Virus record (IMG/VR): IMGVR_UViG_3300028392_000029
Coordinates: 159,177-223,176 of that record
Strand: one strand, 5' to 3'
DNA length: 64,000 nucleotides
Shown here: positions 2,396 through 61,923 of the stretch, piece by piece
How the letters are laid out: every line of letters begins with the position of its first letter
Position numbering within the stretch: the first letter of the stretch is position 1
Made by a program: the position numbers and the translations under genes
Notes under the pieces: model-generated
Databases searched by the model: none
Told to the model about the DNA's origin: nothing
Seen by the model: the letters and a program-made list of their open reading frames with translations, nothing else

Positions 2396-2423
2396 ATTAT
2401 ACAGTGATTGTAACTAAAATCAA
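2396..2423 (-). promoter_or_regulatory. sigma70-type promoter (TTGATT-N16-TATAAT), leaderless transcript
   Basis: Minus strand TTGATTttagttacaatcactgTATAATacaaatATG. Confidence 0.55.
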
Positions 2424-30279: not shown

Positions 30280-30786
30280 TTATCTCAGGAATTCCTGCCA
30301 GTCCAAATTATATTTGACAGAATCCACTTGGTGTACACCTAACACATATAATACATAACTAGCTACGCTAGACCCACGTCCTACACCTCGAACAATATTA
30401 TTAGCTTCGCAAGTGTCAACAAAATACTTTAACCAGCGTAATAAATCTAGCATGTTTCTAGATTTGTATTCTGCCATTTCTTGCATGGCCCTAACAGTGG
30501 ATATTTGAGTCAAACACTTTGAATATACAAATTGTTCAATATCTAGGGTTTTATATTCTTCGGGCATAAACCAGTTTGACTGGCAAGCCTTGTCATAGTC
30601 AGCAACTTCAAAATGGGTTTCATACGGTTCTAAGAATTTAAAACCCAATTGTACTTCTAGTTGTTTAACAGCGTCTGTACGTTCAACGAGTAATGTGTCG
30701 TCGACATTAAATCCGTAATCTTTATATAAAGAATCAAACAGATCTTGTTCTGTAAAAATGGGATTATTATATTTGTCTAAGTGCAT
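30280..30786 (-). CDS. Mini DnaE (DNA Pol III alpha) fragment-like protein
   Basis: YFVD...NIVRGVGRGSSVASYVLYVLGVHQVDSVKYNLDWQEFL matches the DnaE palm GRGS region; start set at MHLDKY. Confidence 0.7.
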   Translation of the reverse strand: MHLDKYNNPIFTEQDLFDSLYKDYGFNVDDTLLVERTDAVKQLEVQLGFKFLEPYETHFEVADYDKACQSNWFMPEEYKTLDIEQFVYSKCLTQISTVRAMQEMAEYKSRNMLDLLRWLKYFVDTCEANNIVRGVGRGSSVASYVLYVLGVHQVDSVKYNLDWQEFLR

Positions 30787-30793
30787 ATACAAC

Positions 30794-31028: not shown

Positions 31029-31613
31029 TTAGTATTCGCCGCTCAGTTTGATATATACGTTAGCTCCGGCATCAACAGACCATGCTTCAATGACTTCAAG
31101 TTTAGTTGAACCAATTGCACCAACTGTGAATGGGCTAAATCCAGTTGCAAAACGCACAACTCCGCCGTTGGCAGTGGCAAATACTGGTGTTCTAACAGCA
31201 ATAGTGTCGCCTTTCAAAATAACTCTAATAATTCCGTATGCAGGTACCGCAGGCCAGCCGGTAAAAGTTAATGTAGCATTTCCTGCGAGTGTAAATTGTT
31301 GTATAGATCCGTTGGCCAAGTTAATATTTGCAGTAGTAGATACAGTTCCACCGGGGTAGAATATACCGTAAAATTGATTATGTGTACCGTTTGTGATAGA
31401 ACTTTGTAACAGATTATTTACTACAGGAGTGGTACCAGTTGCTAGATCTGCTTTTAATAGTGTATTAGTTTGTAGTGCAGTAATTTCAGACTTGGCTACT
31501 CCTAATCCCGCTGAAATAGCAGTAAAGTTGTTACGAAATCCCTGACTATCGTTGTCCTGCCCTGCTACAGGGTAAGTTGTGTTAATTGAGATATAGTTTA
31601 TTTGACTTGTCAT
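31029..31613 (-). CDS. Virion structural protein (tail/baseplate)
   Basis: YPVAGQDNDSQGFRNNF N-terminus, coiled coil, beta-rich C-terminus. Confidence 0.65.
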   Translation of the reverse strand: MTSQINYISINTTYPVAGQDNDSQGFRNNFTAISAGLGVAKSEITALQTNTLLKADLATGTTPVVNNLLQSSITNGTHNQFYGIFYPGGTVSTTANINLANGSIQQFTLAGNATLTFTGWPAVPAYGIIRVILKGDTIAVRTPVFATANGGVVRFATGFSPFTVGAIGSTKLEVIEAWSVDAGANVYIKLSGEY

Positions 31614-34600
31614 ACGGTTATCCTATCATTTCTAAATATAAGGTATTTATCGCCTAGATAACCACTGACAGAATCTATTGTATATCTGTCTACAGTATAA
31701 TCTAATACTTGAAAATCAAATTTACTAAATTTGATGTTTAGCAAAATATCGTTAGCAGTTCCTACTTTACAGAAGCAGATAGGAATAGCTAGGGTATACC
31801 CTTGTTCTTGTTTTTGCCCAGTTTGTATAGTTCTCATCCAAAGCGGCAAATAATTGCGCTCACTTAGTCCTACACCGGATAATCTTGATTGCCAGTTTGC
31901 TATACTATTGGGGAATATCGTATTTGGATTAGGATTAGAGACTTCGTATCCTGTACTGTCGGCTGTTATTATAGGCTCTGGTCGAACAGAATTTGGAGCA
32001 TCTAGATTTAAGACTGCGGCAGAGTTATTCCAGAAATTATTGCTACTATCAACTGTTATAGCATCTGAACTTATTCCAAATTTATTAATTATCTTATTTG
32101 GAAGTTTTCCACTCGCTGGACTTAGCGGGTCTATCATGTTTATATAAATTACTTCGTATAGATCCAACCCTGTAGCAGGATCTACAGCCCTTGACGATGA
32201 CACAGAGCCAAACTGGAATCTTTTACGTTTGTGATTCAATCCCATAGCCCCAATATATGCCGCTGCCTCTTTAGTTTCAATCCCGCCATATACTAGCATT
32301 GATAATGATGATTGAATACCAAAGTTTTGATCATTTATTCTATAAATGCTACTGGGTGTAAAGATGGTTGAGTCATTAATAAATCCCTTCCATATGGCTC
32401 TTTGGTCTTGTTTTAAGAATGGTCGAACTACTATGTTACTATAAGAAGTAGTATTAGGTGTATCAATGGTCAACGTAAATGTTCTAGTACGGGAGCTGTA
32501 ACCAAATTGATCTCGAGCTTCAACAGTAAACTTATACGTATAGTCAAACGTTGCGATACCTTTATCAAACGTAGTGGCACTGGTATCAAATCTAATCAAA
32601 CCCAATGAACCGTTTAACGGATTATAATACTGATTAACTTTACCAATAATTTCTCCGTCAAGATTTAATGTTAGTCCAGGCGGTAGTGCTCCGTCTACGA
32701 TAGAATAGATTACAATAGAATTAGGAACAGATGATACTGCGCTGATGTTTAATGTTGAATAGTAATCTGCATGCAATGTTTCTAAAATACTATTAGTTTT
32801 CCACGTAACAGTACTGTCAATCTCACCGATGATGGTTACTGTAAATGTTTTATATGCAACTGTAGTTTCGCCTTTCTCTCCAATTCTTGTAGCAGTCAGT
32901 GTAAAAGTATAGAGCTTGCTGATAGCAGGTTGATATGGAACTATGCCATATACCTCGCCAGTGCCTGCATCAAATGTAGTACCTGGCGGAAGTTTGCTTA
33001 ATGATCCCATATAAAACGGAACCATATCGGGAAGTGTCATTACTAGCCCAGTTGTTAGAGTTAATCGATATGCGCCACCGCCTAAATCAGCTACTACGGA
33101 AATTCTATATAGTTCACCAGTTGCATTTGGAATATAGTTTGCAAAACTAATGTATTGACCAAATAGCGGCGGACTTGATGCGTTAGTAATAGTTAGACTA
33201 TGACTGCCGATAGTGTTATCTAGATTAGTTAGTTGCTTTGTAATTGCTCGTATTTCTTGATTTGTTGGAGAAAGATTAAAAATAACATTACTATTGTCGT
33301 ATAAGACAATTGGCAGGGTGATATAGTTGTTTGCTCTAAGAACACCTAAGTTTGAATCATTAATCCATACTGGTTCGCGTAAGTATGTTGCATCAGCAGT
33401 AAAATTCCCAGCGCCACCGTCTAACGTTGTTGAGTCTGCACGGAATTGATCTGTACCTACAACAAATATTTTAAAAATTCGTTGAGCATAATTGACACCA
33501 TCAGTTAGTGTTACACGAAATTGATAATTAGAATTGATACTGTTTGGCGGATGTAACGGACTATTGTAGTCATAAAACACTCCATCATACTGATAACTGT
33601 CAAAACCGTCATTGGAAGTAGTACCAAAATCAAATGCCACGCCATCGTAATAGCCATCGTCGTATGTGCCTGAGCCGTCGATCGCTGTGATTTTATAAGT
33701 AGGTAGTATAAATCCCGATAGTCGTCCTGAACTTGACAGCGTAAGTCCTTTAGGTAGTACTCCGTCATCACTGGCTATAAAGTATGTTAGTTTACTACCG
33801 ACTACAGTGTTCAAATCAAATGCTTCAATTTGATAATCAACATGTGTATCGTCAAGTACATATAATTGCTGGTGGACTCCGATCGGCAATGGTCCAGCGG
33901 CAGTTACAAAAACTGGTATATTAGAACCTGTAATAGTTATAGTAAAAGTTCTATCGGCTATATCTGTTCCGTTTGTAGCTCTGATACAAAATTTATAAGT
34001 TGTATCGTTACTAACAATGTATGGACTTCCAGTAATTGTGCTACTTTGTAGTATCAATCCAGGCGGTAATGATCCACTAATCACTGTAAATGTTATTCCA
34101 GCAGTATCGGACAATGGAGGAGGACTAGTGCTAGGTGATCGAGCAACTATGCTTGGAACAGCGCCTGAAATAAGGTCTGCACGTTCTACTGCTACAAATG
34201 CATCAGCCTGCATGTGTACTGTATCAGTATTGCGTAAAATTATATCAGATAAGGTAGCACTATTAATCCAAGTTAAATCTGTTGGATTCCATGGTTGATT
34301 TTGATACCAAGATTGATCACCATCTCGTAATCGAATCATTTGATCTGCTATGATAGCACGGAATGTCGGGCCTACCATTGCTCCTGGATAGCGATCCTCT
34401 GCAAGACCACCAACCCATAGATCTATGTCATTGATATTAACATAAGCTGACTGTAATGCATTGGCTACAGTTACATCGCTAGTAATTTGACTAAAGCTAG
34501 TATATGCTGAAAATCCTAATGCTATACGCATTTGATTTAAACTTGGAAGACCTAAGTCACGCCCACGCTGTATATTTGTTGCGGCAAGATCTAATGCTGC

Positions 34601-35803
34601 CGGAGGATCGTTAAGCAAGTTACGTAAGTCTTCAATAATATATACATCTAATTTGTTAGATATATCGCTGGCTAATTTTCTTAAGAATCCGTTTGCGCCA
34701 CCGTTGCGTTCATACTGTGCAGGTGTTAAGAAAAACGCTTGTCCTAAAGTTAAAGATTCTGTAATGTTGCCTGCTTCATCTACACGATCTTGTGCGCCAG
34801 ACACTATGCTATGGCCAAAGCGTAGTGCCGCGGCAGCAAATTCTATTTTTATACTTGCATCGACTTCAGGTTTAAATCCAGTGTAAGCAGATATCGCATC
34901 ATTACCGATAATCTTTGGTAACCATTCTTTGTAAGTAATGACTTGTTCTTCTGCAATAACAATATTGCGGGCACGTTGATATAACTGTTCACCCGTCCAA
35001 GATGGATTAGCCGCACGTAGTCGATCTACATGCCAGTTATGTTCTCGTATAAACAGTGTCTGAATTGAAGTTAAATCTGGATTTTCAGTTCCACGGGGAT
35101 CGCCGAACAAAAATGATCCATTAACGATGGGACCATATTGTCCGTTACTAGATGTTAACAATTTGCCAGTAGTGGCGATCGAACCGCCTTCTCGTAATAA
35201 TACTGGATTAGTAAATCCACTAACAGGCGCAACACCGGGAGGGTATGCAATACCATAAACTACACTACCATCGATCCACCCTGTTACGTCATTGATCGGC
35301 AGTGCGGCAATCCCATTGATACCTGTACCGGGTGCAACTTGCGCACGAGTTACCGGTATGTGACTACCCGGTGTTAAATTAGTGTCGCCTGCTGGAACTA
35401 TAACATCAATATTAGCACCGCCAGTTCTTTCACTAGCCAGCTCATGAGTTATAAATTGACCCCATGCGTACATAAATCCACTATAGCCAGTTGGATCAGC
35501 AGTTTCACCTTCATTTACTTGATCCCATACTACTAAATTACTAACTGTGCGAGCATTGGCTAGATCAGTACGCATGGCATGTAAGCCATCTGTATAGCTG
35601 TTTACTGGGTATCGGGCAAATGCACTACCAGCAGAATTTCTTAATGGTACTGTTGGGTGATGACCTGTGCCGTCATATGACGGTGGAGGAACACCGTTAA
35701 ACGCCGCCGGAGGTATTAACGGTAATGGTAAGTTAACCGATACTTGTTCAGGGAATGATCCAAGACTGTAACCAGAACGTTGAGTCCAGATGTTTAGTGA
35801 CAT
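31610..35803 (-). CDS. Baseplate wedge-like protein with Ig-like (He_PIG) repeats and an inserted animal heme peroxidase domain
   Basis: Repeated GxLPPGL units; C-terminal YLPLWMR...CFCK...DYTVDRY; peroxidase at about residues 38-535. Confidence 0.8.
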   Translation of the reverse strand: MSLNIWTQRSGYSLGSFPEQVSVNLPLPLIPPAAFNGVPPPSYDGTGHHPTVPLRNSAGSAFARYPVNSYTDGLHAMRTDLANARTVSNLVVWDQVNEGETADPTGYSGFMYAWGQFITHELASERTGGANIDVIVPAGDTNLTPGSHIPVTRAQVAPGTGINGIAALPINDVTGWIDGSVVYGIAYPPGVAPVSGFTNPVLLREGGSIATTGKLLTSSNGQYGPIVNGSFLFGDPRGTENPDLTSIQTLFIREHNWHVDRLRAANPSWTGEQLYQRARNIVIAEEQVITYKEWLPKIIGNDAISAYTGFKPEVDASIKIEFAAAALRFGHSIVSGAQDRVDEAGNITESLTLGQAFFLTPAQYERNGGANGFLRKLASDISNKLDVYIIEDLRNLLNDPPAALDLAATNIQRGRDLGLPSLNQMRIALGFSAYTSFSQITSDVTVANALQSAYVNINDIDLWVGGLAEDRYPGAMVGPTFRAIIADQMIRLRDGDQSWYQNQPWNPTDLTWINSATLSDIILRNTDTVHMQADAFVAVERADLISGAVPSIVARSPSTSPPPLSDTAGITFTVISGSLPPGLILQSSTITGSPYIVSNDTTYKFCIRATNGTDIADRTFTITITGSNIPVFVTAAGPLPIGVHQQLYVLDDTHVDYQIEAFDLNTVVGSKLTYFIASDDGVLPKGLTLSSSGRLSGFILPTYKITAIDGSGTYDDGYYDGVAFDFGTTSNDGFDSYQYDGVFYDYNSPLHPPNSINSNYQFRVTLTDGVNYAQRIFKIFVVGTDQFRADSTTLDGGAGNFTADATYLREPVWINDSNLGVLRANNYITLPIVLYDNSNVIFNLSPTNQEIRAITKQLTNLDNTIGSHSLTITNASSPPLFGQYISFANYIPNATGELYRISVVADLGGGAYRLTLTTGLVMTLPDMVPFYMGSLSKLPPGTTFDAGTGEVYGIVPYQPAISKLYTFTLTATRIGEKGETTVAYKTFTVTIIGEIDSTVTWKTNSILETLHADYYSTLNISAVSSVPNSIVIYSIVDGALPPGLTLNLDGEIIGKVNQYYNPLNGSLGLIRFDTSATTFDKGIATFDYTYKFTVEARDQFGYSSRTRTFTLTIDTPNTTSYSNIVVRPFLKQDQRAIWKGFINDSTIFTPSSIYRINDQNFGIQSSLSMLVYGGIETKEAAAYIGAMGLNHKRKRFQFGSVSSSRAVDPATGLDLYEVIYINMIDPLSPASGKLPNKIINKFGISSDAITVDSSNNFWNNSAAVLNLDAPNSVRPEPIITADSTGYEVSNPNPNTIFPNSIANWQSRLSGVGLSERNYLPLWMRTIQTGQKQEQGYTLAIPICFCKVGTANDILLNIKFSKFDFQVLDYTVDRYTIDSVSGYLGDKYLIFRNDRITV
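34196..35690 (-). other. Peroxidase-cyclooxygenase superfamily (An_peroxidase) domain
   Basis: SYDGTG, WGQFITHE (distal Q/H), IDGSVVYG, GDPRGTEN (distal R/E), FIREHN, RFGHS (proximal H), NIQRGRDLG, DIDLWVGGLAE, RLRDGD. Confidence 0.92.
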
Positions 35804-35885: not shown

Positions 35886-38600
35886 TTATGTTAGTCCTGT
35901 TCCGTTGATGTACCACGTTGTGGCTGCCACTTTAACTGCGGTGGCCATACCATGTGCGGCCAATGTGCGTGTACCAGTTGTACCTGTACCTGCTAGATAC
36001 ATAGTGTCTGTGGTAATAGCAATACTGACTGTGGTAGCACTTGGACCAGCTATGAATGTAAGTGTAGTTCCTATTGGATAGGCCACTGTTCCATTTGCTG
36101 GAATAGTCATAGTCTGACTTGCTGTATTCACATAAATGTGTTTGCCAGAATCACCTATGGCCAATGTAGCACTAGTGTTGGTAGCACTTTGTGGAAGTCC
36201 TAGATACCCTAGGCTAGAAGCTGTACTTGATGTAGTAGCAGTTGCCGCAAAGCCAGTGATAGGTGCACCGCTTGCACCTATGTTCAATGCTGTGGTAGCA
36301 CTACCAGCAATGGTAACTGAAGTTTGACTTGCATCGTTTAGCACACTAGTGGCCGTTAATACATCAACGTTGTTGATTTTATATTTCTTGCCTGAAGCAA
36401 TGTTCCAATGTTCACTTGCAGTCCAGTTGGTATTGGCATTGTCCCAGACTATGGTTTTATCAGTGGTACCTTTGAGAGTAATACCGCCGCCGTTGGCAGT
36501 TACATCAGTTGCACCTGTTGTTGTAATATTGGTAACTGAGCCAGCAACTGGTGTTGTACCGCCAGTTGCCGTATAAGTTAAACTTGTACCATCAATAATG
36601 CTAGCAACAATATAAGCTCCAGACCCACCTAAACTTCCCGGAGCACCATTAGTAGCAGAAATTGCACTGCCGACAATTAGATCAGTAGTGGTCGTCATGC
36701 CGGTAATAGTTGCGGCCCATGGACTTCCTAGTGCTGTAGCCACAGTTAGTGTTAAACTATTTGAGCCTAATAGGCCGCCTAATACCGCACCTGAAATAAG
36801 AATGGTGTCGCCGATCGCATACCCACTTCCCGGAGTAGCTACAGTGATAGTCGTGAATCCAGCGTAACTGGTTCCGGATCCAGTTTTTGTAATATTAAAT
36901 GTTGCACCTATGCCTGTACCACTGGTAGATAGCTGACTTACACCTGAATAAGTTCCGGCTGCGGAAACACTAGTACCGCTAGCTGTAAAAGTAGTTGAGC
37001 CTTGTAGTAGTGCGCCCTTGATAGAGCCAACAGTTCCTGTAGCACTAACTGTTTGAGATGCCACACTGCCTAGTTCAATATTTTTGTCATCAACGGTAAC
37101 AGTAGTTGAATTAATGTTTGTACTTGTTCCTTGTACAGTTAAGTTGCCACTGATAACTACGTTGCCGGTATGCGATAATGTAGAGTCATTGCCAATTTTT
37201 GTAGCCAGTGTTAGTACACCGAGGCTGTTTGTTACATAGAATGTTAAACTTCCCGGAGTCTTTCCGGCTGCTACTGTACCGTCAACAGATGATTCAATTT
37301 TTGCAGTGTACTGCAAATTAGTTCCATCATATGATCTAAATGCTATCTGTCCAGTCATGTCTCCAAAAATTAAAGTTGTTGGAGTAGCAATAGTTCCCCT
37401 GTATTTTCTTAATGATAGTATTGCTGGATTGTTATCACTAAAGTAATTGCTTACCCTTAAGATCGAACTGTTGCCGCCGGCAGTTGCGGTAACATCTAAA
37501 CTACCGCTACCTCCGTCGTTAGTAAAAAACGGACCAATAGTCACCCTGCCTACACCTGTCGCTCGTAATACTGAATTTATATTACCGTTGATATCTTGAA
37601 CATTCATGGTCAAGCTACCGGGCATGTTACCTTCGATATATCCTGCGACTGTCTGAGGGCCTAGGGTGCCAACTAGTGCATACTGCACTTGGGTAGTAGT
37701 CGGAGTTCCTGTAATGACGAAAGTTCCATTGAATGCAGTTGGGGTAACTCCAGCAACTAGAATAGTTTGACCTGTAACAAAACAAACACTAGGTTGCGCG
37801 GCAAAAGTTAAAGTAGCAGTTCCGCCAGATGCAAATGCCGCGGTGATAGCTATTCTAGGATTAACTACAGGTCTAACAGTTGTTGCTCGACCAGCAACAA
37901 CACTAACGTTATTATCTATAACTTCTGCTCTTATATTTGCGACAAGCTGAAATTGATTACCGGTGTGTCCTGAAAACGCTAGGTATCCTATATCATCAAA
38001 ATAAGATAGTGACGTCGGTACAATACTTGTTCCTCGTCCTCGTCTAATAGAAATAGAATTGCCAAGACTGTCATTATTATATGTGTCAGATAACAGTACA
38101 CTTCTACCACTAGATGATGCAACAATTCGGAATGTACCGTCAGTATTGGTTAGAATATTATCGACTTCGCCCCAGACAAGATTTTGTGATGCCGCTATAG
38201 TATTTCCAGCCGCTGGCCAATAAGCCAGCGAGCCTGCTATGCCGGTAGGTATGACATTCAGTGTTAGCGTACGAGTAACACTATTATATGAGATTGTAAT
38301 GCCTTTTGTTGTTGCAGTTGTTAATAAGGCAGCAGCCGCATCTTTTGTTCGATTTGTTGTAAAGTAAGTATTATAGGTACCTTCGTTGACGTTGTCAGTA
38401 GTTAGGGCAACATTGCCTATTTGGCCGTTAACAGTTTGTACAGGTGCTAGAGAAATGCCCCCGGCAACTAAACTGCCAGTGCCCCCAGTCTTACCTCCAA
38501 CATACAATAAATTAGTATCAGTTGTATAGAGTAATTCACCTTCTGCAGGAGTAATCCCAGTTCGTTGACTGTTGGTGCCTCTTCTTATTTGTAATGTCAT
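35886..38600 (-). CDS. Tail fibre protein
   Basis: Mtd-like N-terminus LQIRRGT...EGELLYTTDT; Gly/Thr-rich modules; AGGAG SD. Confidence 0.8.
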   Translation of the reverse strand: MTLQIRRGTNSQRTGITPAEGELLYTTDTNLLYVGGKTGGTGSLVAGGISLAPVQTVNGQIGNVALTTDNVNEGTYNTYFTTNRTKDAAAALLTTATTKGITISYNSVTRTLTLNVIPTGIAGSLAYWPAAGNTIAASQNLVWGEVDNILTNTDGTFRIVASSSGRSVLLSDTYNNDSLGNSISIRRGRGTSIVPTSLSYFDDIGYLAFSGHTGNQFQLVANIRAEVIDNNVSVVAGRATTVRPVVNPRIAITAAFASGGTATLTFAAQPSVCFVTGQTILVAGVTPTAFNGTFVITGTPTTTQVQYALVGTLGPQTVAGYIEGNMPGSLTMNVQDINGNINSVLRATGVGRVTIGPFFTNDGGSGSLDVTATAGGNSSILRVSNYFSDNNPAILSLRKYRGTIATPTTLIFGDMTGQIAFRSYDGTNLQYTAKIESSVDGTVAAGKTPGSLTFYVTNSLGVLTLATKIGNDSTLSHTGNVVISGNLTVQGTSTNINSTTVTVDDKNIELGSVASQTVSATGTVGSIKGALLQGSTTFTASGTSVSAAGTYSGVSQLSTSGTGIGATFNITKTGSGTSYAGFTTITVATPGSGYAIGDTILISGAVLGGLLGSNSLTLTVATALGSPWAATITGMTTTTDLIVGSAISATNGAPGSLGGSGAYIVASIIDGTSLTYTATGGTTPVAGSVTNITTTGATDVTANGGGITLKGTTDKTIVWDNANTNWTASEHWNIASGKKYKINNVDVLTATSVLNDASQTSVTIAGSATTALNIGASGAPITGFAATATTSSTASSLGYLGLPQSATNTSATLAIGDSGKHIYVNTASQTMTIPANGTVAYPIGTTLTFIAGPSATTVSIAITTDTMYLAGTGTTGTRTLAAHGMATAVKVAATTWYINGTGLT

Positions 38601-38614
38601 TCTATTCTCCTACC

Positions 38615-39085
38615 TTAAAAGGTTCCTAAATCGTATGTACCTATTGGGTTGGCAAATGTGCCTTGATCGCCAATAGTGCCGCTTAATAATGTTTGTACTT
38701 GGGTATTTAATGTTCGTATATCAAAACCCCAAACTGTGGTTTGTATGTCACCCGTGCCCGTTATGTTGTGATTATTTAAATTTAAATTACCACCTAATCT
38801 TGGAACCGGGTCGCTTTGTACAGCACCTAACGCATTGATATTAACTGTGGTCGGGGTACTTGTAACAGTAACTCCGCTACTGCCTGTTATGGTTTTAAAC
38901 TGTAGTACGCCGTTGGTATCTACTGAAAATAACCCAGCTCCTGATCCAATGTTCTGTCCGTTTATACCGGCAATTTGTGCTGATAAAAATACAAAATTAT
39001 CATTAGCTTTGGTAAAAGCCGTGCGTAAATCATCGCCTGTACCGTCATTCGCGTATGAACCTAATTTAATCTGTTGAATTGCCAT
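38615..39085 (-). CDS. Short tail/baseplate protein
   Basis: gp9/gp10-like N-terminus ANDGTGDDLRTAFTKANDNF; DPVPRLGGNL; TAAATA at 39104-39109. Confidence 0.75.
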   Translation of the reverse strand: MAIQQIKLGSYANDGTGDDLRTAFTKANDNFVFLSAQIAGINGQNIGSGAGLFSVDTNGVLQFKTITGSSGVTVTSTPTTVNINALGAVQSDPVPRLGGNLNLNNHNITGTGDIQTTVWGFDIRTLNTQVQTLLSGTIGDQGTFANPIGTYDLGTF

Positions 39086-39115
39086 GGTCTATTCCGTTTA
39101 GTATATTTACCGTAA

Positions 39116-41863
39116 TTAGCTAATGCTTACTCTGTGTATAGTCAGTCTACAGCCGCTGGCAAGATCGATATTTGCTCCGCTAGCATTCCTTAAAACAAAA
39201 CAATGAATGGTGTCCCCGGCGGTGGCTTGAACCACAGTTGAATAGTGTAGATATCGCCCCGACCATGCATCCTGCATGATTGTGACTGTTTTAGCACCGT
39301 CACTGCTGTCTATGAGGAAAAAGCTACCTGAGTTTAATGTCACTGATGTTGAGAAATATATTGACACATTGAATTGATAGTATCCTGTATATGGTGCTGT
39401 GAATACACCATTGGCGTATGCATTAGCAGTGTCCACTGTTTCAGTAAACAGAATGTAGGCGGCACTTGCTTGATCTATGATTGTTCTTGTAGTTGATGTT
39501 TGGGCAATCACTGTGACAGGTTTGTAACTGGCAATAACACTGGCATCTGGTAATGTTATCTGGCCACTACTTCCAAAAATATAATTGTTACCGCCCACTT
39601 GTAGTGTAATGGCATTTGATAAAGTATTTGACAGCGTGTCTCCACTGAACGCAAAATTACCCAAACTTGGTGCGGATCCGTAGGTAACTTCTTTAGTTGT
39701 GGTGTTGTAATATAACACATTGGATGTTGCTGTGGCAGTTCTAATTGGTGCCACATAGAAACTGTTGGGTTGTTCGGCAACACTATTGACTATAACACCG
39801 CTGGCATTTAATATGATGGTGTTGGCCGCTTGGTTGTTGTCTCCCGCCCTATAACCGATTGCTATGGCATTGGCACCTTGGCCGCCTAGGCCGGCTTGCT
39901 TACCAATGGCCACGCTGTTTACACCTTGTAAGTTATACCCAGCACCAAAGCCCACAGCCACTGCACCTTGACCTTGCACGGATATTCCAGCCAAGGCACC
40001 AATGGCCACTGTTTCAGTTCCTTGGTCACTATTACCCGCTTGTGTGCCAATGGCCACTGCATTGGCACCTTGTGAGGTTGTTCCGGCATCTTCACCAAAT
40101 ACCACACTATTACCCGCAGTGTCTTTTATCACTGCACCGTTGGGCAATGTCAATGCACCATCCGTGCCAAATGTAAAATTATGTGGAACTGTGCTTGAGG
40201 TTGAAAAAGATACACTACGGATACCCGTATTGTTAGGCAGTGTGCCGTCTACTCTACCACTCACACGCTGCCAGGTTGGATGTGCTGGATCGTATTGTCC
40301 TTGAGTTGTGAACGCCTGTGTTATGGTGCCAGTAAACAAATTAGGCTGGCCACCGGATGTTTCATACACCACACCCATACCCGTGCCCAGAGCCAGTCCA
40401 GTCACATAGGTCACAAACGCAGGGGTTCCGAACAGGGCAAACTCAATCTGTGACGGATTGCGTTGATACCATCCCTGTATAAATGTGCCGTTTACTGTTA
40501 TGTCTCTTGAGAAGGCTTGCGCATTGTTATAGGTCGGACTGGTGGTAACCACTGTTTCCTGAGTGGTAACTGCAAGCGCAGTGTCTACCGCAGATTTAAT
40601 GGTGTTGCTGGGAAATGTCAATACACCAGTTGAAGCAAGACTCAATGTGCTGCCACCGTTGACCAAACTACTCACACTGCCAGTCCAGGCTGTGGTCTGT
40701 ACAGAAGCGTCTGGGAATGTTAAGCTACCATCTGTGCCAAGACTCCACTGTTTAACACCACCAGAAGTTTGTGTTTCAATTTGCAACACTTTGTTAAGAT
40801 CAGCGGTTATAGTAGAGTAAGGCGTGCCATTTTTCCGAAAGGTGAGTCCTGACGGCAATGTTAAGACGCCACTAGAACTAAGGCTCACAGTTTGTGTGCT
40901 GTTGACTAATGTGCTTACACTGCCAAGCCAGGCTGTGGTTTGTACCGTGGCATTGGGGAATGTTAAATTACCATTCTTGCCAAAGGTCCAGATACTGTTT
41001 GTTGCCCCAGGCTTATAAAAACTCCAAGATGAAACGCCAAAAGTATCGCTAGCACCTGTGAAGTCGTCAGTACTTAAAGTTATACGCCATTCCCCAATAT
41101 TAGCGTCAGGAGCAGCCACAGCAGTTATTTGCATTACACATGTTCTACTAATCACATAGTCACCAACAGCGACTACGGTTGCCCAATTGGGTGCTGAAGA
41201 AATTGAGAACACTAGGGTAAAAAAATCACTGTAAAGAGCACTAAGGTTAGATAGGTAATAAGCGCCAGTTTGTATTTTTATATCCAATGCTGATTTTATT
41301 TTTGACCCAACTCCAGCCATGATATCAAAATTTGGCAATGTTACTGTGCCATCCGAGCCAAGGCTCACTGTGCGAGCACCGTTGACTAATGTGCTTACAC
41401 TGCCACTGCTGGCAGTAACAACGCCACTGCCATCTATACTTAGGCCAGTGCCAATTTTGATACCACCCAATATGGATGCGGATGCTGTGGGCAATGTGTA
41501 AGCACTGGGTATGGTGGGCTTGTTGGTCAAGTCTGTATATGAACCACTGAACAATGTGGGTTTGTTCAGTATAACTCCTAATCCACTAGATGCAGTCCAG
41601 TTGCTTTGTACCTGTGCCGCCGCCCCAGTTAGTAATATTTTGTTATTGGCATCATCATAGGTCACCGTGATGTTGGTGTGACTGGCATGTGTGAACAAGG
41701 GTGCCGCATAGTCCTGTGCCAGTTCAATCAAAGCCGCACTTGAACCGCCAGTTAAGGCATACAGTTCTGTGAAGTTTGCATTTACTTTTATAAACGCATT
41801 ACGAAGTGTATCACCGCTTTTGTCGTTGGCACTAGCACCAACTAGGATATTTTGTTTAGACAT
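39116..41863 (-). CDS. Tail fibre/receptor-binding protein with YadA-like head repeats and a C-terminal C1q-like domain
   Basis: ANDKSGDTLRNAF N-terminus; repeated AVAIG; GVFTAPYTGYYQF. Confidence 0.8.
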   Translation of the reverse strand: MSKQNILVGASANDKSGDTLRNAFIKVNANFTELYALTGGSSAALIELAQDYAAPLFTHASHTNITVTYDDANNKILLTGAAAQVQSNWTASSGLGVILNKPTLFSGSYTDLTNKPTIPSAYTLPTASASILGGIKIGTGLSIDGSGVVTASSGSVSTLVNGARTVSLGSDGTVTLPNFDIMAGVGSKIKSALDIKIQTGAYYLSNLSALYSDFFTLVFSISSAPNWATVVAVGDYVISRTCVMQITAVAAPDANIGEWRITLSTDDFTGASDTFGVSSWSFYKPGATNSIWTFGKNGNLTFPNATVQTTAWLGSVSTLVNSTQTVSLSSSGVLTLPSGLTFRKNGTPYSTITADLNKVLQIETQTSGGVKQWSLGTDGSLTFPDASVQTTAWTGSVSSLVNGGSTLSLASTGVLTFPSNTIKSAVDTALAVTTQETVVTTSPTYNNAQAFSRDITVNGTFIQGWYQRNPSQIEFALFGTPAFVTYVTGLALGTGMGVVYETSGGQPNLFTGTITQAFTTQGQYDPAHPTWQRVSGRVDGTLPNNTGIRSVSFSTSSTVPHNFTFGTDGALTLPNGAVIKDTAGNSVVFGEDAGTTSQGANAVAIGTQAGNSDQGTETVAIGALAGISVQGQGAVAVGFGAGYNLQGVNSVAIGKQAGLGGQGANAIAIGYRAGDNNQAANTIILNASGVIVNSVAEQPNSFYVAPIRTATATSNVLYYNTTTKEVTYGSAPSLGNFAFSGDTLSNTLSNAITLQVGGNNYIFGSSGQITLPDASVIASYKPVTVIAQTSTTRTIIDQASAAYILFTETVDTANAYANGVFTAPYTGYYQFNVSIYFSTSVTLNSGSFFLIDSSDGAKTVTIMQDAWSGRYLHYSTVVQATAGDTIHCFVLRNASGANIDLASGCRLTIHRVSIS
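40901..41405. repeat. 25-bp identical direct repeat, 480 bp apart, inside the tail fibre gene
   Basis: gttgactaatgtgcttacactgcca at 40901-40925 and 41381-41405; a third diverged copy near 40660. Confidence 0.9.
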
Positions 41864-44800
41864 TATGATCTCCCTACTGCAACTTCGATTACGCCCACAC
41901 TATCGTAGTCTTTGTCCTGGATAGCCTTACCAATAATACTGCCAATCTGTGGATTAGTTGACTTGACTGCGCAACCCTCTACAGCTGATGTTGTTAGTAA
42001 ATCACCCTTCTTAACTCGACCAACTACTCGGCACGGAATACGACCTGCTAGTGCTAGACAGACCTTGATGCCCTGTTGTCCTTCGTTCATTACATAAGCC
42101 GGGTTAGTTGTTACTACACCTGCTAATCTAGTGTCGTTAAATGTAGTAGTTGAAGTAACTTCTTTGTCACCACCAAACACTAACACCCAACCTTCTGGAT
42201 ATTCTTGATCACCTTCATAGAACTCAGCCAAGTCAGCATATGTACTGCGTAGTTGACTACCAGTTGTTAAACTCCAGTTACCATCAATAGTACCAGCGGC
42301 TGTACTTGATCCAGCTGTTAAGTTATTTGATTTTAATATACCTAGGCTAAAATCAAACTGGCTACTAGCCGTCAAGTACCACTGACCCTCCATTGATCCA
42401 CCAGTAGCAGGTGCACCAGCAGTAAATGTTGTAGCAACTAATGTTCCGTTGCTGGTATTTAAAGTACCCTGTGTAGTAATAGTAGTGTTACTGCCAGTAG
42501 TACCAACAGCAGTCATGTAGTAGAATGGAGTTGCTTGAACTATACCACCTGGGGTACTATGTTGTACAGTAGTTCCGCTAGTTGATAGTACTGTGAAGCC
42601 TCCAACTTTTAAGTTAGCAACGTCGGCACTTCCATCAACCCCAGTTTTAAGTATTTGATTAGCACCACGAGTTGAAGTAATACCAACTACAGTATATGAA
42701 TTATTTGCACTGTTAGATCCGTCATAGCCTACGACCATAGCACCACTTGCGCCAAACGATCCATTACTAATACCACCGGCAGCATTTAAAATCTGTGTTG
42801 GTGTTACTTCTGACGGACTAGCGGCGCTGGCAGTTAAATTACCAAGCACAGTTCCAACACTCATCTGTTGTATTTTACTATAGGTAATACCGGTTATAGC
42901 ACTAGTACTGGTTAATAAATCAATCCAACCGTTGGTACTGCTAAATGACGAGCTGTTAAAACTAGCTATACCTAAATCAGCTTGCGCAATTCCAGTGTAG
43001 TTAGCTCGAGTCGTAGCCGCAGTCATTGCCAGCTTGCTTTGCGCGATTGCCGCGCTAGCATTAACATCGGCGTTGACAATTGCTCCGGCATTGAGGTTGG
43101 TAACTATAGTGCCGGTGCCCGAGTTGTAGGTGATCGATAAATCACCTGTAGGAGCCGCAACGTTTTTCCACTTACCCAACCCGACATCGTACACTAAGAA
43201 CGATCCCGATGACACAGCATTTAAGAAGAATATAGTTCCACTTGGGTTGCTGTTCGGATATGTTCCTAGAGTAATTGTGGCAACACCTGCGCCGCTGATA
43301 CTCACACTTTGAACGATCTGAGTACCGTCAAATCCAGTACCATACACTGCTAACCCGCTAGTAATACTTCCACTGATGTTGTTAACTGTTAACACATAGC
43401 TAATACTACTGCCGCTTAGATACAGGCCCCTGCCAGCGGCAATGCCCACATCTAGCAATTTGAATATCGAGTTTAATGCAATCAAACTTTGGTCAACATA
43501 ATCTCTGTTAGCCCCGTCATACTTGCTAGTACTGGTACTTGGCATTGTTAAATTACCAATACTAAAGTTACCTAAATTTAAATTACCCTTCATGGCTAGT
43601 GTGCCGTTAAGTGCTAGATATCCTGGGCCGATCAAACTAGTTGTAGCTACTGGACTACCGCCATAGTCTAAACCTAATCTGTTGTCAATGAAACTACGAG
43701 TAGCACTTTGTACCGGAACAATGTCCGGTGCGTTATCAGTCATTGTAGGATCAGTTGAGAATTGAGTAACAACAACACCGCGTTTAAATCCTAAACCGTC
43801 CAAGTTACTAAGGGCAATACTTGCTGAGAATGTAACAGTACCAGTGCCCTGGTCAACGCTGAAGAATCGACCTACACGGAATATACCGTTTTCGTCTGTG
43901 GTCACATAGAACACACGACCTACTGTTTCTTCTTTAACTTGATTACTACCGTTTGACTGTATTGCCGGATTACCGTAAATTTGTACAGGATAGTTAGTAG
44001 TAACATACCCGCCAGTACCGATATCTAAGAAGTCATGTCCCGTAGCTCGGCAAGTACTAATACGTGTGGTAATTTGAGCCGCTGATCCAGCTGGTCTACC
44101 TAGACGCAGGGTAGCACTGGTAAGAGTACTAAATGGTCTTCCAATACCTAGCGTATTGCTAGAGCCACTAGTTACTTCTAAAGTCACAGTAGTATTAAAC
44201 GCTGTACTCCATGTACCCGGATCTTGAGGATATGTTAGTGTAATAGTTGTGGCGCTACTTGCACTGCACAAATAGAATCCGTTGTACAATGGATTGTTGT
44301 TACCCGAAACAAGATAATAGCTTCCTGTAACGGGCGCAGTTGTTGTGGCAAAATTCAATACCACACTGTAAGTCGGGCCAGTACCGATGATAGTCTTACT
44401 TGTAAATCCAGTACTAGCATCAACTGCAAGACTTGTACCATATCCGTAGTTTGGAGAATACAATGACAACAGAGTTCCTACACTAACACTACCAGACGAT
44501 ACGGTTATATCGCTTCCACCTAATGAAGTAGCAATACCGATAGATGTTCCTGCTACTTTGTTAATGTAGTACAATGTATTTGGAGAAACTCCGTTAACTG
44601 GCGTTAAGATGGTCCCAGTTCCAAATGCCGAGCCACTGAATGTAATCTGTTGTCCAGCATTTAATCCGGTAGCCGATGCAACTGTTAATAGATTTGCCAG
44701 CCCTGAAATACTAGTACTGGAAACAGTTTGACTTGCACTAACTGTGTAACTGGTACCGACAATACCAATATTAATTCCGTTAGTAGCCGCACCACTGAGT

Positions 44801-47800
44801 GTGAACGGGCCGGTGCCACTGGCAATATATGTTCCGGTAGGTATACCGGTCCCCACCAACACCATACCAATACTTGGAGCAGTACCTGATACAATAGTTA
44901 ATGTAGTTGTACTTGTAATAGTTCCAACAAACGTTGCACTATTAACAGCAGTAATATAAGTTCCAGTAGTTACTCCAGATCCGGATAATACCATACCGAG
45001 GACAGGAGTGCCAGATGCTACAGTAGTTAAACTTAATGTAGTACCTGTAATCCGTCCAGTAGAACTTAATGTGCTATTAGTAGTTGCAGTAACATTTGAA
45101 TTTGCTCCCGGGTCGGTTGGATACAACAATGACATGGTCACAGTATTTGTACCAGCACTGGCTGTTGTAGCAACGGTAGCTGTTGATGTTAGCACTGGTG
45201 TAAGCAATACGCTACCCAATGCAGGTGTTACTGTAATAATAGGTTGAGAAGTGTATCCGTATCCTGGACTCACTAACACATAGGCTACGATACTACCGTT
45301 GGCAATAGTTACTGTTGCAATGGCTTGACTTGTCGCACCACCGCCTGAGAACACAACGGTTGGAGGATTTGCTGGATCAAATCCACTACCACCATTGGTA
45401 ATTGTAATACTTTGTACGGTAGCTACTAAACTAGAACTTACTATACTGCCCGATGGAATCCAAACAGCAGGAGCCACTGTAAATTTAGTTGTACTATCAA
45501 TACTTTGGATAATAGTTCCACTAGGAACATATGCGCCAGTGCTGGTAGATGATACTACCATGCCTACAGATAAACTAGAAGTAGATGATACTGTTAGTTG
45601 ACTGCTGTTAACAATGCCAGCAATCTGCTTGCTTCCGTTATAACTAGTATTACTGTTATTTGCTATGGTAATATAACTGTCGACCGCAGGTAACTGTGCC
45701 GTCGGACTGTATGGAATATTAAATGTTACAATCTTAGCAGTTGTACTACCTGTTTGCAGTACACTACTAGCATAGGTCATGGAATTGATAACAGTTCCAT
45801 CGGCCGCTAAGTTGCTTATTGGGTTAGGGTCAACACTTAAATATCCGTTGGCTGTAACACCAAATGTAACAGTGCCAGTTGGAGGGTTAACTGTAGCCGC
45901 GCTACTCAAGGTGATTGTTGCTGTATTTACACCACCAGAATTAGATATAACAACAGTTGATACAGTTTGTGTTCCGTTGAATCCTGTACTACTGCCAGTA
46001 CTTGTTAAGATTTGACCTTGACTAATTGTACCTGCAAGACCGTTAACTACTAGTGTATAAGTTGGCCCAGCTGTTACAGTATAGCTTACAAACAACCCTG
46101 TTGAAATAGTCAGTGGCGCAGTATAACTAATAACTCTATGTGTACGACCACCCCAGCCAACTACATAAGTTCCTTTGTTAATTTGATTAATGGTTGATGC
46201 CGAACTAACGGCTAACACAGCAATTTTGTTATCTCCAACCTTACTACCTTGAGTTTTAGTAGCGTCAGTTGGATCCAATTGCGTTATATTATTACCATCG
46301 GTTGTAAATTTATAATAGCTAAAGCTAGCATCAGTTTGTAACACTGATATGTTTGCACCTAAAGTTTCTCCAGTTGCCTCAGTTAACCCATATGCAATTA
46401 CTCGATAAATTTCAGATAAATTGTCAACATACTGTAACGCAGTACTTGGACGTACAGGTTTAACGTTATCAATATTATTGAATTTTATAGCTTGTAATAC
46501 TCTAAAGGTCACAGTTTGACCGTCATATAATGCGTATTGTAGTCCAGTGCTTGAAGTACTGTCAGTGCCTGCGGTACTAAGAGTTACAGATAATATGTTT
46601 TTACCATTGATAGTAACAGTGGTGTGTGCAATTGTTGATATTAGATATCGAACAATGCCGCCACTCTGTACACCGTGATCAATTTCCAGTTCGCTGGCAG
46701 TGTATGGAGCATATGAGTATCCGGTAATGTATAGAGTGACAGACTGTTTAGTTGAAGTTGGAGTCATCTCATTAACAAACAAACCTTGCTTGTATATACG
46801 AGCTACCTGAACCATATCATAGGATAAGTTTACACTATCGGGCAATTCTGTTACGTCGTATCCTGTAGCACGTAAACCATAAACACCGTGTGAGTTAGAA
46901 CCAGCAATACTTCGAACTTGACCGCCATTGTTGGCCCAGTAGCCTGTGTAACAGTAATATGAGAATGTAGATACTTGTTCAGTCAATCCACCGTTGGTTG
47001 CAAATACACCATAACCTAAATCGTTAATTTGTGTAAAGTCGTTAGCCAACATGGACTTATTACCGCCCATTTCAATATTGATACCTAGACCGGCACCACT
47101 GTTTAAGTAGGCAACTGATCCAGATAACAATGTAGATTTCAATCCCTGTAATGTAGTGTAATCACTAGATCTAGTTTGACTTGAATACCATGATTGACTT
47201 GCAGGGGTAGTACGTGTAGTTGGCGTATCAAAATCACCATCTGCAACATAGTCAGTTAGAATTGCAATCTCGGTGTTTACTAATCCTGCTTCAGTTGCGG
47301 TTGCCACAGGCAAACTTATATTTTGAGTATATGGATTACCAGCAGATTTACTTACAGTTTGATTTTGAACAACCTGTTGCATAACAGTATTCAATCGACC
47401 GTATGCCGCAACGCAGTAAGATTCTTCTCCTAAGATTTGACTCACACCGCTGCCGTAATAACTTAGCGATACATCATAGATGGCGCTATTACCACCATAC
47501 ATAATATCGTAACAGATAGCATCAATAATAAATCCTGTATCTCTTTGAGATTTAAGGGCGTTATAATTAGGAATAGTGTTTACGTTATATGTACTAGCAA
47601 TCCAAGCAGACACTTCCTGTTGTAAGAATATTCTGTTAGCTTGTAAAATATTTTTTGCCTTAACAGCATTAGGATTGTTATAAGTACCACCCGGTGTTGG
47701 GAAGGTAGTCGCTGGCACGGTAGTAACACCGTTATTGATCATGTTAGTAATTGTAAGCAAACTTGCCGCAATTGAATTCTTGCCAGTAGTTGATACACTA

Positions 47801-57158: not shown

Positions 57159-57608
57159 TTAGCCTTCGTATGTAGCCGAGTTAGCACCATGTTCTGCACA
57201 TTCTACCCTTACACAATAGCAACGATTATTAGTCTTTTCTCTTATTAATTGATCAGCAAAATTAAAAGCATGTTCAGCAAACTTCTCTGCACCTACGCCA
57301 TCAAAGATGCGAATCTCTGCTAGACCTAACATTTCCAATTCTAAAAACTTTGACAAATATGGATCACTTTTATCCAATGCTAGTTTGTGATCAAAGTGAT
57401 CTTCCAGCCATGCCTTGAGCAACTTAAGACCGCCAAAGTCTACTGCCCAGTTTTTATTGTCTAATGTTTCACAACCAAAGGTAAACGTAAATGCTAGACT
57501 ATAACCATGTAGCAAATGACAGTGACTGTGATCTGCGTTTGGTTGACGGAATACAGCACTTAGTCCAATGTTGTGTCCATAGTGTTTTGTTGAGTAAAAT
57601 TTTGCCAT
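57159..57608 (-). CDS. queD: 6-carboxy-5,6,7,8-tetrahydropterin synthase
   Basis: HCHLLHGYS, WAVDFGGLK, FDHKL, GAEKFAE, VECAEHGANSA. Confidence 0.88.
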   Translation of the reverse strand: MAKFYSTKHYGHNIGLSAVFRQPNADHSHCHLLHGYSLAFTFTFGCETLDNKNWAVDFGGLKLLKAWLEDHFDHKLALDKSDPYLSKFLELEMLGLAEIRIFDGVGAEKFAEHAFNFADQLIREKTNNRCYCVRVECAEHGANSATYEG

Positions 57609-61039: not shown

Positions 61040-61923
61040 CCTGTAGATCTATTTAAGATTTTGATTTCTATACTTTTGGCTAGTCTATCTGCAACTCTAC
61101 GATTCCAGGTTTCCCCAAAATGCAGACCATCTCGTGCCATATTTTCGGGTAGCATCTCGCCGGCAGATAGATTTGCCCAAATTATATCATCAAATTTGAT
61201 ATTTAATTGTTCTTCCCACATGGTATCATAAGTCCATTGGTATACCGGAATACCGGCCAGTCGCCATAATAGTATAGTCGAGTGATACATCATAAGAGCA
61301 TTATAAGAGTCTGATTTATGCTTGATCATACAGCTATAAAATTCTGTTAGATTTGGACTACCTTTGGGAAAGTTTGCGTAACTTTCATCTAACTGCCAAG
61401 GGCCGAGCATACCATATGCTTCTAAATTTTTATACATCATCCTACAGGTTTGAGGCCATTGTATTACTACAAATTTTGGTCTGATGCTAGATGTGTTTTT
61501 TAAAAATAACAAAGAGTTAAGATAAACTAATTCTGCACTTCCGCCGCCCTTGGCATGATTAATTACAGGTATATTTAATTTGTCGCTAAGGATATTCGCC
61601 CACATTTCGTCTTCAGCTAATCCTTCGCCCTCCGTGAAACTGCAACCAAACACCATAAAGAAATTGTTATCAGTAACATCGGATAGGTCTTTGCTACGGT
61701 ATCCTAATGAGTTTTTTGCATATGAAATTTGCTTAGTAGCATATCGCCATGATGGTCCCATAATCTTTAGATTTTTAAAATAAAGTTTTTCAGTATCAGT
61801 ACCATTAGGACTAAAAGTAGTTGGGGCGGTGCGGTCTGAGAAATTAACAGCAATGCTATTGTATGAGTCAACTCTATCAATAATTCGTCCCAAGTTATGT
61901 TTATTAACAGTAAGATTATTCAT
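61036..61923 (-). CDS. SGNH/GDSL-hydrolase-like protein
   Basis: NSLGYRS, FGCSFTEG, NHAKGGGS, RDGLHFG. Confidence 0.65.
   Translation of the reverse strand: MNNLTVNKHNLGRIIDRVDSYNSIAVNFSDRTAPTTFSPNGTDTEKLYFKNLKIMGPSWRYATKQISYAKNSLGYRSKDLSDVTDNNFFMVFGCSFTEGEGLAEDEMWANILSDKLNIPVINHAKGGGSAELVYLNSLLFLKNTSSIRPKFVVIQWPQTCRMMYKNLEAYGMLGPWQLDESYANFPKGSPNLTEFYSCMIKHKSDSYNALMMYHSTILLWRLAGIPVYQWTYDTMWEEQLNIKFDDIIWANLSAGEMLPENMARDGLHFGETWNRRVADRLAKSIEIKILNRSTG

Follow-up and report, generated by a model that had tools for sequence, protein, structure and literature searches.

A heme peroxidase domain inserted in frame into an Ig-like domain of a tail-region protein of an uncultured freshwater jumbo phage

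Can a complete heme peroxidase be carried inside a phage structural protein, and if so, is the arrangement real, is the enzyme likely to be functional, and where would it act? The question was raised by a 64,000-nucleotide stretch (the window; positions 159,177 to 223,176 of IMG/VR record IMGVR_UViG_3300028392_000029, a 223-kb contig). The DNA polymerase of this phage is nearest to those of Sinorhizobium phage Phosso, Agrobacterium phage Atu_ph07 and Rak2-like phages, and we consider it an uncultured freshwater jumbo myovirus. A megablast comparison of 20 kb against INPHARED produced no match. An earlier note, based on the nucleotide sequence alone, described an animal-type heme peroxidase grafted through Pro-rich linkers into an Ig repeat of a baseplate protein, and proposed that a virion-displayed enzyme detoxifies H2O2, cross-links the tail or attacks the host surface. 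The observation was confirmed by our analysis. The interpretation was supported only in part, since the domain, its clean in-frame insertion and its linkers were verified, while the baseplate assignment was not shown and the functional options remain inferences.

The region 31610-35803 (minus strand) is a single ATG-started open reading frame of 1397 amino acids. A Pfam search showed that residues 42-536 (34196-35680, minus strand) match An_peroxidase (PF03098) practically end to end (E=3.2e-114, 382.9 bits against a cutoff of 25, profile positions 3-530 of 530). The motifs listed in the earlier note were located at WGQFITHE, aa 114-121 (35441-35464), GDPRGTEN, aa 234-241 (35081-35104), RFGHS, aa 328-332 (34808-34822), and NIQRGRD, aa 410-416 (34556-34576). 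These motifs align with the distal Gln and His (Gln116, His120), the distal Arg and the heme-ester Glu (Arg237, Glu240), the proximal His (His331) and its Asn and Arg partners (Asn410, Arg413) of peroxidases of known structure, of which the best hits were PDB 8s6c_A (E=1e-82) and the Dictyostelium enzyme 6erc (E=1e-63). In a census of 45 phage copies, Q116, H120, R237, E240, H331, N410, R413 and D235 are kept in 45 of 45, once inserts nested inside the peroxidase of two of the copies (P0031 and P0032) are accounted for. The distal Ca2+ site residues T174, W176, D178 and S180 are conserved, and the residue following the distal His is Glu in the window and Asp in 31 of 45 copies. The domain therefore has the sequence features of the peroxidase-cyclooxygenase superfamily, although heme binding, formation of the ester bond and turnover of H2O2 are inferred from sequence alone.

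To determine if the peroxidase is an insertion, the protein was compared with P0028, an orthologue of 862 amino acids with an 86% identical scaffold that lacks the block. Where P0028 reads LTLPITNGTGITFSVISG, the protein of the window reads LPLPL, then about 539 amino acids, then GITFTVISG. The He_PIG profile (PF05345; E=1.9e-20 with two stretches in the window protein) points to the same site, because profile positions 17-94 match P0028 aa 21-90 but only positions 28-96 match the window protein, at aa 559-625. The roughly 535-amino-acid block thus sits in a loop of the N-terminal He_PIG Ig-like domain of a protein of about 860 amino acids. Residues 1-29 (35717-35803, minus strand) are a conserved N-terminus (M-x-L-N-x-W-T...LPLPL), aligning with aa 1-29 of insert-less orthologues, that holds the first β-strands of this domain; in the AF2 model of P0028, strands 12-18 and 23-26 belong to a domain with pLDDT 82-92. 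They are followed by the left Pro-rich linker, IPPAAFNGVPPP (aa 30-41, 35681-35716, minus strand), which is absent from P0028, and by the peroxidase. The end of the cassette (VERADL...) and the right Pro/Ser-rich linker, SPSTSPPPLSDTA, occupy aa 537-568 (34100-34195, minus strand), and the remainder of Ig-like domain 1, GITFTVISGSLPPGL..., occupies aa 569-625 (33929-34099, minus strand). An AF2 model of aa 1-700 of the window protein, obtained with an alignment of 28 sequences, had a mean pLDDT of 51.5, which is too poor to show whether the N-terminal strands complete the split Ig domain around the insert or to inspect the heme pocket.

The possibility that the junctions are assembly chimeras, which had been named beforehand as a condition that would refute the observation, was ruled out. 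Of 31 IMG/VR loci from 23 metagenomes, all 27 that are long enough to be judged encode the fusion as one open reading frame, and an independent assembly of the same phage includes the right junction. Furthermore, two phage contigs, L003 and L004, with 99.5-99.7% identical flanks, differ by a precise in-frame presence/absence of 1599 bp with CCAGG at both junctions. An intein or homing element was also rejected: Pfam found no Hint, intein or homing-endonuclease domain, and the junction residues, L|I on the left and A|G on the right, are not those of a self-splicing insert.

The peroxidase behaves as a cassette that is gained, lost and exchanged among phages. The phage peroxidase copies form one clade but are scattered over the scaffold tree, where at least 19 state changes are required. 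The direction of these changes, gain or loss, cannot be read from this tree because distant scaffolds entered the hit list only by virtue of carrying the peroxidase, which biases the sampling. Against one relative, dS is 0.20 in the cassette and above 1.6 in the rest of the gene. In a sister phage lineage (P0035), at a syntenic locus, the peroxidase is found in a different He_PIG loop, that of the last He_PIG domain (VTWKTNS...GALPPGL, aa 999-1044 in the window protein). Selection on the peroxidase is strongly purifying, with dN/dS of 0.064 and 0.081 at unsaturated dS. A recent capture from a cell was rejected, since the best identity to cellular homologues is 45-53% and those genomes have 62% GC compared to 40% for the phage.

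One correction to the earlier description concerns the heme-ester residues. The Asp that forms the second heme ester bond in mammalian enzymes, adjacent to the distal His and also used in families 1 and 2 and in the cyanobacterial LspPOX, is Thr119 in the window protein and Thr in 45 of 45 phage copies, while Asp was found in 112 of 116 cellular homologues in a protein search and in 8 of 8 from a genome scan. This substitution predicts a single-ester enzyme like D. discoideum peroxidase A (DdPoxA, PDB 6erc), the only characterized member with a single Glu-heme ester, in which Asp is replaced by Ile. DdPoxA oxidizes iodide and thiocyanate very fast, bromide poorly and chloride not at all (PMC5787809). 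By analogy, the change makes chloride or bromide oxidation by the phage enzyme unlikely and iodide, thiocyanate or one-electron chemistry more likely. DdPoxA is, however, a eukaryotic secreted glycoprotein with disulfides, while the phage peroxidase domain has no cysteines. The closest cellular counterparts are the short bacterial peroxidases of family 6, such as LspPOX (8s6c_A is the best solved match), which share with the phage domain the fold family, the length of about 500 amino acids, the distal Gln-His-Arg and proximal His-Asn-Arg triads, the heme-ester Glu, the Ca site and the absence of cysteines. The cellular relatives are stand-alone secreted proteins, often with a signal peptide or RTX repeats, while the phage copies are embedded in a phage structural protein.

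The next question was the identity of the protein that carries the peroxidase. Downstream of Ig-like domain 1, aa 626-1115 (32459-33928, minus strand) form a chain of further Ig/cadherin-like domains, as judged from the AF2 model of P0028, that includes a Tyr/Asp-rich low-confidence segment and the last He_PIG domain. Residues 1116-1397 (31613-32458, minus strand) are a conserved C-terminal domain, unassigned in the AF2 model, that is always C-terminal in 901 representative clusters detected by a phmmer search of 1.84 billion representatives, and we interpret it as the virion anchor. The scaffold showed no match to a baseplate protein or to any solved or annotated fiber protein. PHROGs gave nothing significant, Pfam detected no baseplate family, and a profile of the scaffold against PDB sequences returned no hit at E<=1. 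Foldseek searches with the P0028 model returned only cadherin and Ig chains from PDB, and uncharacterized "Ig" phage proteins, Atu_ph07 gp329 and a K64-1 protein from BFVD, none of which assigns a place in the virion.

The evidence for a location in the tail is contextual. The upstream neighbors (35886-41863, minus strand) encode a tail-fiber-like protein of 904 amino acids with an Mtd_N N-terminus, a T4 gp9/gp10-N-like protein of 156 amino acids, and a protein of 915 amino acids with an N-terminus like cyanophage gp10/gp9 baseplate-wedge/tail-pin proteins; T4_gp9_10_N was identified in the L003 orthologue. The gene lies in this tail-fiber/baseplate-periphery block, and the synteny is conserved at the related loci L001, L003, L004 and L038. 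The one cultured relative is Atu_ph07 gp329 ("extracellular serine proteinase"), which shows the same scaffold logic: an enzyme cargo, in this case an N-terminal Peptidase_S8 rather than a loop-inserted heme peroxidase, He_PIG repeats and the homologous C-terminal domain. It is encoded beside tail fiber and sheath genes and was detected by virion MS/MS, although with only 3 peptides and 2% coverage, and the relationship is distant, as it shares only the He_PIG and C-terminal parts (24% identity over aa 1087-1376 of the window protein). Other cargos found on the same scaffold are YHYH, CBM_5_12 and ubiquitin-like domains.

Taken together, the data lead us to favor, with moderate confidence, an explanation in which the gene encodes a tail-module structural protein and a complete, bacterial-type, short family-6-like peroxidase is inserted in a surface loop of its first Ig domain, so that it would be displayed as a globular cargo of about 60 kDa on the fiber. 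Our analyses establish the insertion and its exact site, the intact catalytic and Ca-site residues, the strong purifying selection, and the gain, loss and exchange of the cassette together with its second insertion site. The rest is inferred, including heme loading, activity, substrate and presence in virions. In this view, the domain would take up heme b in the host cytoplasm, needing no disulfides since it has no cysteines, and would form a single autocatalytic Glu240-heme ester bond. On the released virion it would use ambient or host-derived H2O2 to oxidize easily oxidized donors (iodide, thiocyanate, phenolics or tyrosines) at the cell surface or in the surrounding matrix, although H2O2 in lake water is low and turnover per virion would be slow. 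It would thereby act like other swappable virion enzymes, such as proteases and depolymerases, that condition adsorption or penetration.

Other explanations were considered less likely. An antioxidant role, in which the peroxidase removes H2O2 in the infected cell before assembly or around the virion, protecting catalase-poor freshwater hosts or the particle itself, with the fusion being only a way to express and carry it, is compatible with the conserved catalytic machinery, the purifying selection and the freshwater origin of the phages. However, peroxidases of this superfamily need a co-substrate and generate reactive products rather than simply removing H2O2, and a few copies per virion cannot change bulk H2O2. 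In addition, a tail-fiber-type scaffold that elsewhere carries a protease or carbohydrate-binding modules points to action on the host surface, and no stand-alone phage copy was seen among the 27 judgeable loci. We regard this role as unlikely, and somewhat more so the formation of dityrosine or similar bonds that would harden the tail apparatus or lock the fiber irreversibly to the host surface, as ovoperoxidase and peroxidasin do in extracellular matrices. A conserved Tyr/Asp-rich segment of the scaffold (about 9 Tyr in 40 amino acids, around aa 700-745) and the preference of a single-ester peroxidase for one-electron or low-potential substrates would agree with cross-linking, but the segment is equally conserved in the majority of orthologues that lack the peroxidase, and near-identical phages do without the enzyme, so it is not needed for assembly.

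It is equally doubtful that the protein is a soluble or lysis-released enzyme encoded inside the structural gene block. The virion evidence is indirect and, as it rests on Atu_ph07 gp329, weak, yet the conserved N- and C-termini, the Ig-chain architecture, the conserved position between fiber/baseplate-periphery genes in all relatives and the absence of a signal peptide argue against this possibility. The least likely alternative is that the domain is a non-catalytic, peroxinectin-like adhesin. It sits in a host-recognition-type protein, and its presence or absence co-varies with a swapped segment of the neighboring fiber gene, but every catalytic, proximal and Ca-site residue is invariant or nearly so in 45 copies that share only 51-94% identity overall, and the low dN/dS values also speak against it.

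Tail-spike depolymerases, endosialidases and tail lysozymes are likewise catalytic domains carried on host-recognition or tail proteins, modular and exchanged by recombination, but the known examples are hydrolases or lyases acting on polysaccharide or peptidoglycan, while the domain described here is a predicted heme redox enzyme that would need H2O2. Literature searches for a phage or virion heme peroxidase found no described case, in agreement with the earlier note; the one report connecting PF03098 with phage concerns bacterial DUF4214 proteins. A conserved, selected heme peroxidase on a tail-module protein would add oxidative chemistry to the ways in which phages deal with the cell surface and would link infection to environmental H2O2 and halide chemistry. 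It is possible, although tentative, that phages of this group use it as an oxidative host-surface enzyme, which would be the first redox (H2O2-dependent) enzyme in a phage host-recognition apparatus. It would be carried on a "plug-in" Ig-loop platform from which the cassette of roughly 1.6 kb hops between loops and between co-occurring phage genomes, giving peroxidase-positive and peroxidase-negative variants within near-identical populations and so modulating host range or adsorption in H2O2- and iodide-containing fresh waters.

The system is also an unusually clean natural example of domain insertion, in which the same domain of about 535 amino acids sits in two different Ig loops, with nested inserts inside it, a circularly permuted cellular sister, and presence/absence polymorphism between phages that are 99.5% identical around it. 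It is thus a testable model for how structural proteins acquire cargo and a possible natural scaffold for enzyme display on phage particles. Ig-type domains are combined with a peroxidase of the same superfamily in the extracellular animal proteins peroxidasin and peroxinectin, with roles in matrix cross-linking and adhesion, but the domain order and origin are unrelated, so the architecture is convergent, and the animal enzymes have two ester bonds and make HOBr.

A single ATG-started ORF (31610-35803, minus strand) encodes a protein of 1397 aa with no internal stop. Pfam matches An_peroxidase (PF03098) with an E value of 3.2e-114 over aa 42-536, which covers profile positions 3-530 of 530, as well as the Ig-like domain He_PIG. 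When the sequence was compared to those in the PDB, the best hits were 8s6c_A (a 528-aa chain deposited as 'Lactoperoxidase', E=1e-82) and Dictyostelium peroxidase A, 6erc (E=1e-63), followed by eosinophil peroxidase, dual oxidase, myeloperoxidase and lactoperoxidase. The catalytic motifs that an earlier note had recognized by eye are located at aa 114-121, 234-241, 328-332 and 410-416, and they align with the distal Gln/His, the distal Arg and heme-ester Glu, the proximal His, and its Asn/Arg partners, respectively (residue roles as given in PMC5787809). The observation made in that note is therefore correct and far beyond chance.

The peroxidase is an insertion into an Ig domain. A search of 5.8 billion proteins identified more than 1390 relatives of the scaffold, most of which are about 860-870 aa long and lack the peroxidase, while about 45 clusters are about 1400 aa long and carry it. 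The nearest scaffold, P0028 (862 aa, 86% identical), reads ...LTLPITNGTGITFSVISG... where the window reads ...LPLPL, then about 539 aa, then GITFTVISG... He_PIG profile positions 17-94 match P0028 aa 21-90, but in the window only positions 28-96 match, at aa 559-625. In the AF2 model of P0028, aa 1-90 form one confident domain (pLDDT 82-92), and the insertion point falls in the loop between strands 23-26 and 36-42. Both linkers are Pro-rich. The sharpest evidence came from the comparison of two metagenomic phage contigs, L003 and L004, which are 99.5-99.7% identical in DNA on both sides and differ by a 1599-bp in-frame block. The junctions (marked by a slash) are TTA CCA GG/C on the left and ATT CCA GG/A on the right, against TTA CCA GGA at the empty site.

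To determine if the fusion could be an artefact, the IMG/VR loci with this peroxidase were inspected. There are 31 such loci from 23 metagenomes, one of them a 223,176-bp contig identical to the window. In all 27 loci with enough sequence, one uninterrupted ORF runs from the peroxidase into the C-terminal domain of the scaffold. Furthermore, an independent 25-kb assembly of the same phage contains the right junction. These results showed that the fusion is not an artefact. Nine of the 31 viral contigs (L058, L059, L062, L064-L068 and L070) end inside the peroxidase cassette, which fits a sequence shared between co-occurring strains with divergent flanks and suggests branching of the assembly graph at that sequence.

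The window is phage DNA. It carries a T4-type family-B DNA polymerase, clamp loader, PhoH, Clp/Lon-type protease, endolysin, holin and virion proteins. The polymerase is nearest to those of jumbo phages, namely Sinorhizobium phage Phosso (49%), Agrobacterium phage Atu_ph07 (45%) and Rak2-like coliphages (44%), although there is no nucleotide match in INPHARED. A close insert-less relative comes from a freshwater lake metagenome project. The window also includes a tryptophan-halogenase-like gene, a QueD-like gene and a radical-SAM gene (2420-3640, 57159-57608 and 61916-63277, minus strand), for which no link to the peroxidase was established. In addition, a stand-alone ORF of ~170 aa (30280-30792, minus strand) matches only the NTPase part of DNA polymerase III alpha (PF07733) and is conserved at the same position in the loci L001, L003, L037 and L038.

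The scaffold has no PHROG, no baseplate Pfam family and no PDB sequence relative, and its model is a chain of cadherin/Ig-like domains followed by a C-terminal domain without an assignment. The evidence that it belongs to the tail apparatus is contextual. The gene always sits downstream of a giant ORF, which in the window encodes 3934 aa (41863-53667, minus strand), has no Pfam match and lies in the same structural block; its equivalents in relatives range from 2122 to 4381 aa. Nearby are a protein with a T4 gp9/gp10-like N-terminus, an Mtd_N-type fibre protein, and a 915-aa protein whose N-terminus resembles cyanophage 'baseplate wedge subunit and tail pin'/gp9. The C-terminal ~100 aa (aa 800-904) of the neighboring fibre-like protein (35886-38600, minus strand) are 47-58% identical to proteins of small freshwater phages, including Limnohabitans phage YIMV22061, a weak hint at the host or receptor. 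The only cultured relative of the scaffold, Atu_ph07 gp329, combines Peptidase_S8, three He_PIG repeats and the homologous C-terminal domain. It lies next to tail-fibre and sheath genes and is listed in the published virion MS/MS table, albeit with only 3 peptides and 2.08% coverage. In one relative (L001:8415-10001), a Pro-kuma_activ + Peptidase_S8 (sedolisin/subtilase-like) gene lies directly upstream of the peroxidase-bearing gene, which echoes the S8 protease fused to the scaffold in Atu_ph07. Therefore, the designation 'baseplate wedge protein' is not demonstrated, and the supported wording is a tail-module structural protein, probably a peripheral fibre or whisker.

The C-terminal domain occurs in 901 representative clusters, always at the C-terminus of proteins 500-1650 aa long. 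Among 40 long members, 38 have He_PIG, 7 have a YHYH domain and 4 have CBM_5_12, and another member has an N-terminal ubiquitin-like domain. The ubiquitin-like domain (P0052), the CBM_5_12 modules (P0067 and P0034) and the YHYH domains (seven members of one alignment) are other cargos on the same scaffold family, and unassigned inserts of about 70-230 aa sit at the same N-terminal Ig loop in P0077, P0081 and P0115. The scaffold is thus a general cargo-display platform.

Several lines of evidence indicated that the peroxidase is a mobile cassette. On a tree of 128 scaffolds built without the insert columns, the peroxidase carriers are scattered, at least 19 gains or losses are needed, and the sister of the window's scaffold, P0028, lacks the insert. 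In contrast, all phage peroxidase domains form one clade against the cellular homologues (100 SH-aLRT). The two trees disagree: the window's peroxidase is 94% identical to that of the relative P0001, whose scaffold is only 51% identical. At the DNA level, comparison of the window with the locus L041 gave a dS of 0.20 in the peroxidase but above 1.6 in the rest of the same gene, and the upstream gene is unrelated. A more distant lineage at the syntenic locus (P0035 and relatives; L038 and L039) has an intact first Ig domain and carries the same cassette in a loop of the last He_PIG domain, between GLTRF and TTFDGG. The heptapeptide IPPAAFN sits at the left junction of the cassette in the window (35699-35716) but at the right junction in this lineage (P0035 aa ~1130-1140); it may be a trace of a tandem or permuted intermediate, or chance in Pro-rich linkers. 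Some copies carry nested insertions inside the peroxidase domain, just after the distal-His helix, of about 190 aa in P0031 and P0032 (aa ~130-320) and about 100 aa in P0074 and P0114 (aa ~140-240). The distal motif WGQF(I/L)TH is retained, making this a domain within a domain within a domain.

The sequence of the enzyme looks like that of a functional peroxidase, with one telling change. In 45 phage copies sharing 51-94% identity, Gln116, His120, Asp235, Arg237, Glu240, His331, Asn410 and Arg413 are invariant; the apparent exceptions, P0031 and P0032, are alignment shifts caused by the nested inserts. The Ca-site residues are kept, and dN/dS is 0.064 and 0.081 at unsaturated dS. The window's domain has no cysteine, and 31 of the 45 copies have none, which suits folding in the cytoplasm, where virions assemble. 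The Asp that forms the second heme ester bond in mammalian enzymes and LspPOX is Thr in 45 of 45 phage copies, while it is Asp in 8 of 8 genome-derived and 112 of 116 metagenomic cellular homologues. The only characterized single-ester enzyme, DdPoxA, has a lower reduction potential and oxidizes iodide and thiocyanate at more than 1e8 per M per s, bromide very poorly and chloride not at all (PMC5787809). By analogy, we infer that the phage enzyme should not make HOCl or HOBr and should handle iodide, thiocyanate and one-electron donors.

What our analyses demonstrated is a full peroxidase domain under selection, displayed from an Ig loop of a tail-module protein and exchanged as a cassette. 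The steps beyond this are inferences: that heme b is loaded in the cytoplasm, that a single autocatalytic Glu-heme ester forms, that the enzyme is active on the released particle using ambient or host-derived H2O2, and that it acts on the host surface or matrix, the latter by analogy with the protease, carbohydrate-binding and other cargos on the same scaffold. An antioxidant role, cross-linking of the virion, a non-catalytic adhesin and an enzyme that is not part of the virion were considered as alternatives. Between the near-identical L003 and L004 phages, the other marked difference is a swapped segment of the neighboring fibre gene (L003:2868-5987 versus L004:2871-5987). In these two phages, which are 99.5% identical elsewhere, the Mtd_N-type fibre protein next to the peroxidase gene differs strongly in aa ~100-400 (32-59% identity) and is 85-100% identical over the remaining length up to aa 1000. 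This swap co-varies with the presence of the peroxidase and links it to the host-interaction apparatus. The interpretation offered in the earlier note is thus supported in part: the insertion and the enzyme are supported, while the baseplate location and the function are not yet supported. Full-text literature searches found no report of a heme peroxidase in a phage virion or tail protein. Although both the peroxidase family and the idea of tail-borne enzymes are known, a redox heme enzyme as loop-inserted, swappable cargo on a phage structural protein appears to be undescribed.

The closest cellular homologues of the cassette are stand-alone secreted peroxidases at 45-53% identity, which come from Bradyrhizobium and uncultured Alphaproteobacteria and from MAGs labelled Mycobacterium, and include RTX-repeat forms. 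No recent donor is identifiable. Three cellular proteins (P0317, P0321 and P0328; L072:1509-3389) carry a signal peptide and sit on a 62%-GC contig with housekeeping genes. They are circularly permuted, with peroxidase residues 141-527 followed by a linker and then residues 13-127. These three proteins share the phage-specific Thr at the heme-ester Asp position and fall as sister to the phage clade once de-permuted, although the branches are long and the placement must be treated with caution. Circular permutation implies that the termini of the domain lie close together, which is what a loop insertion needs.
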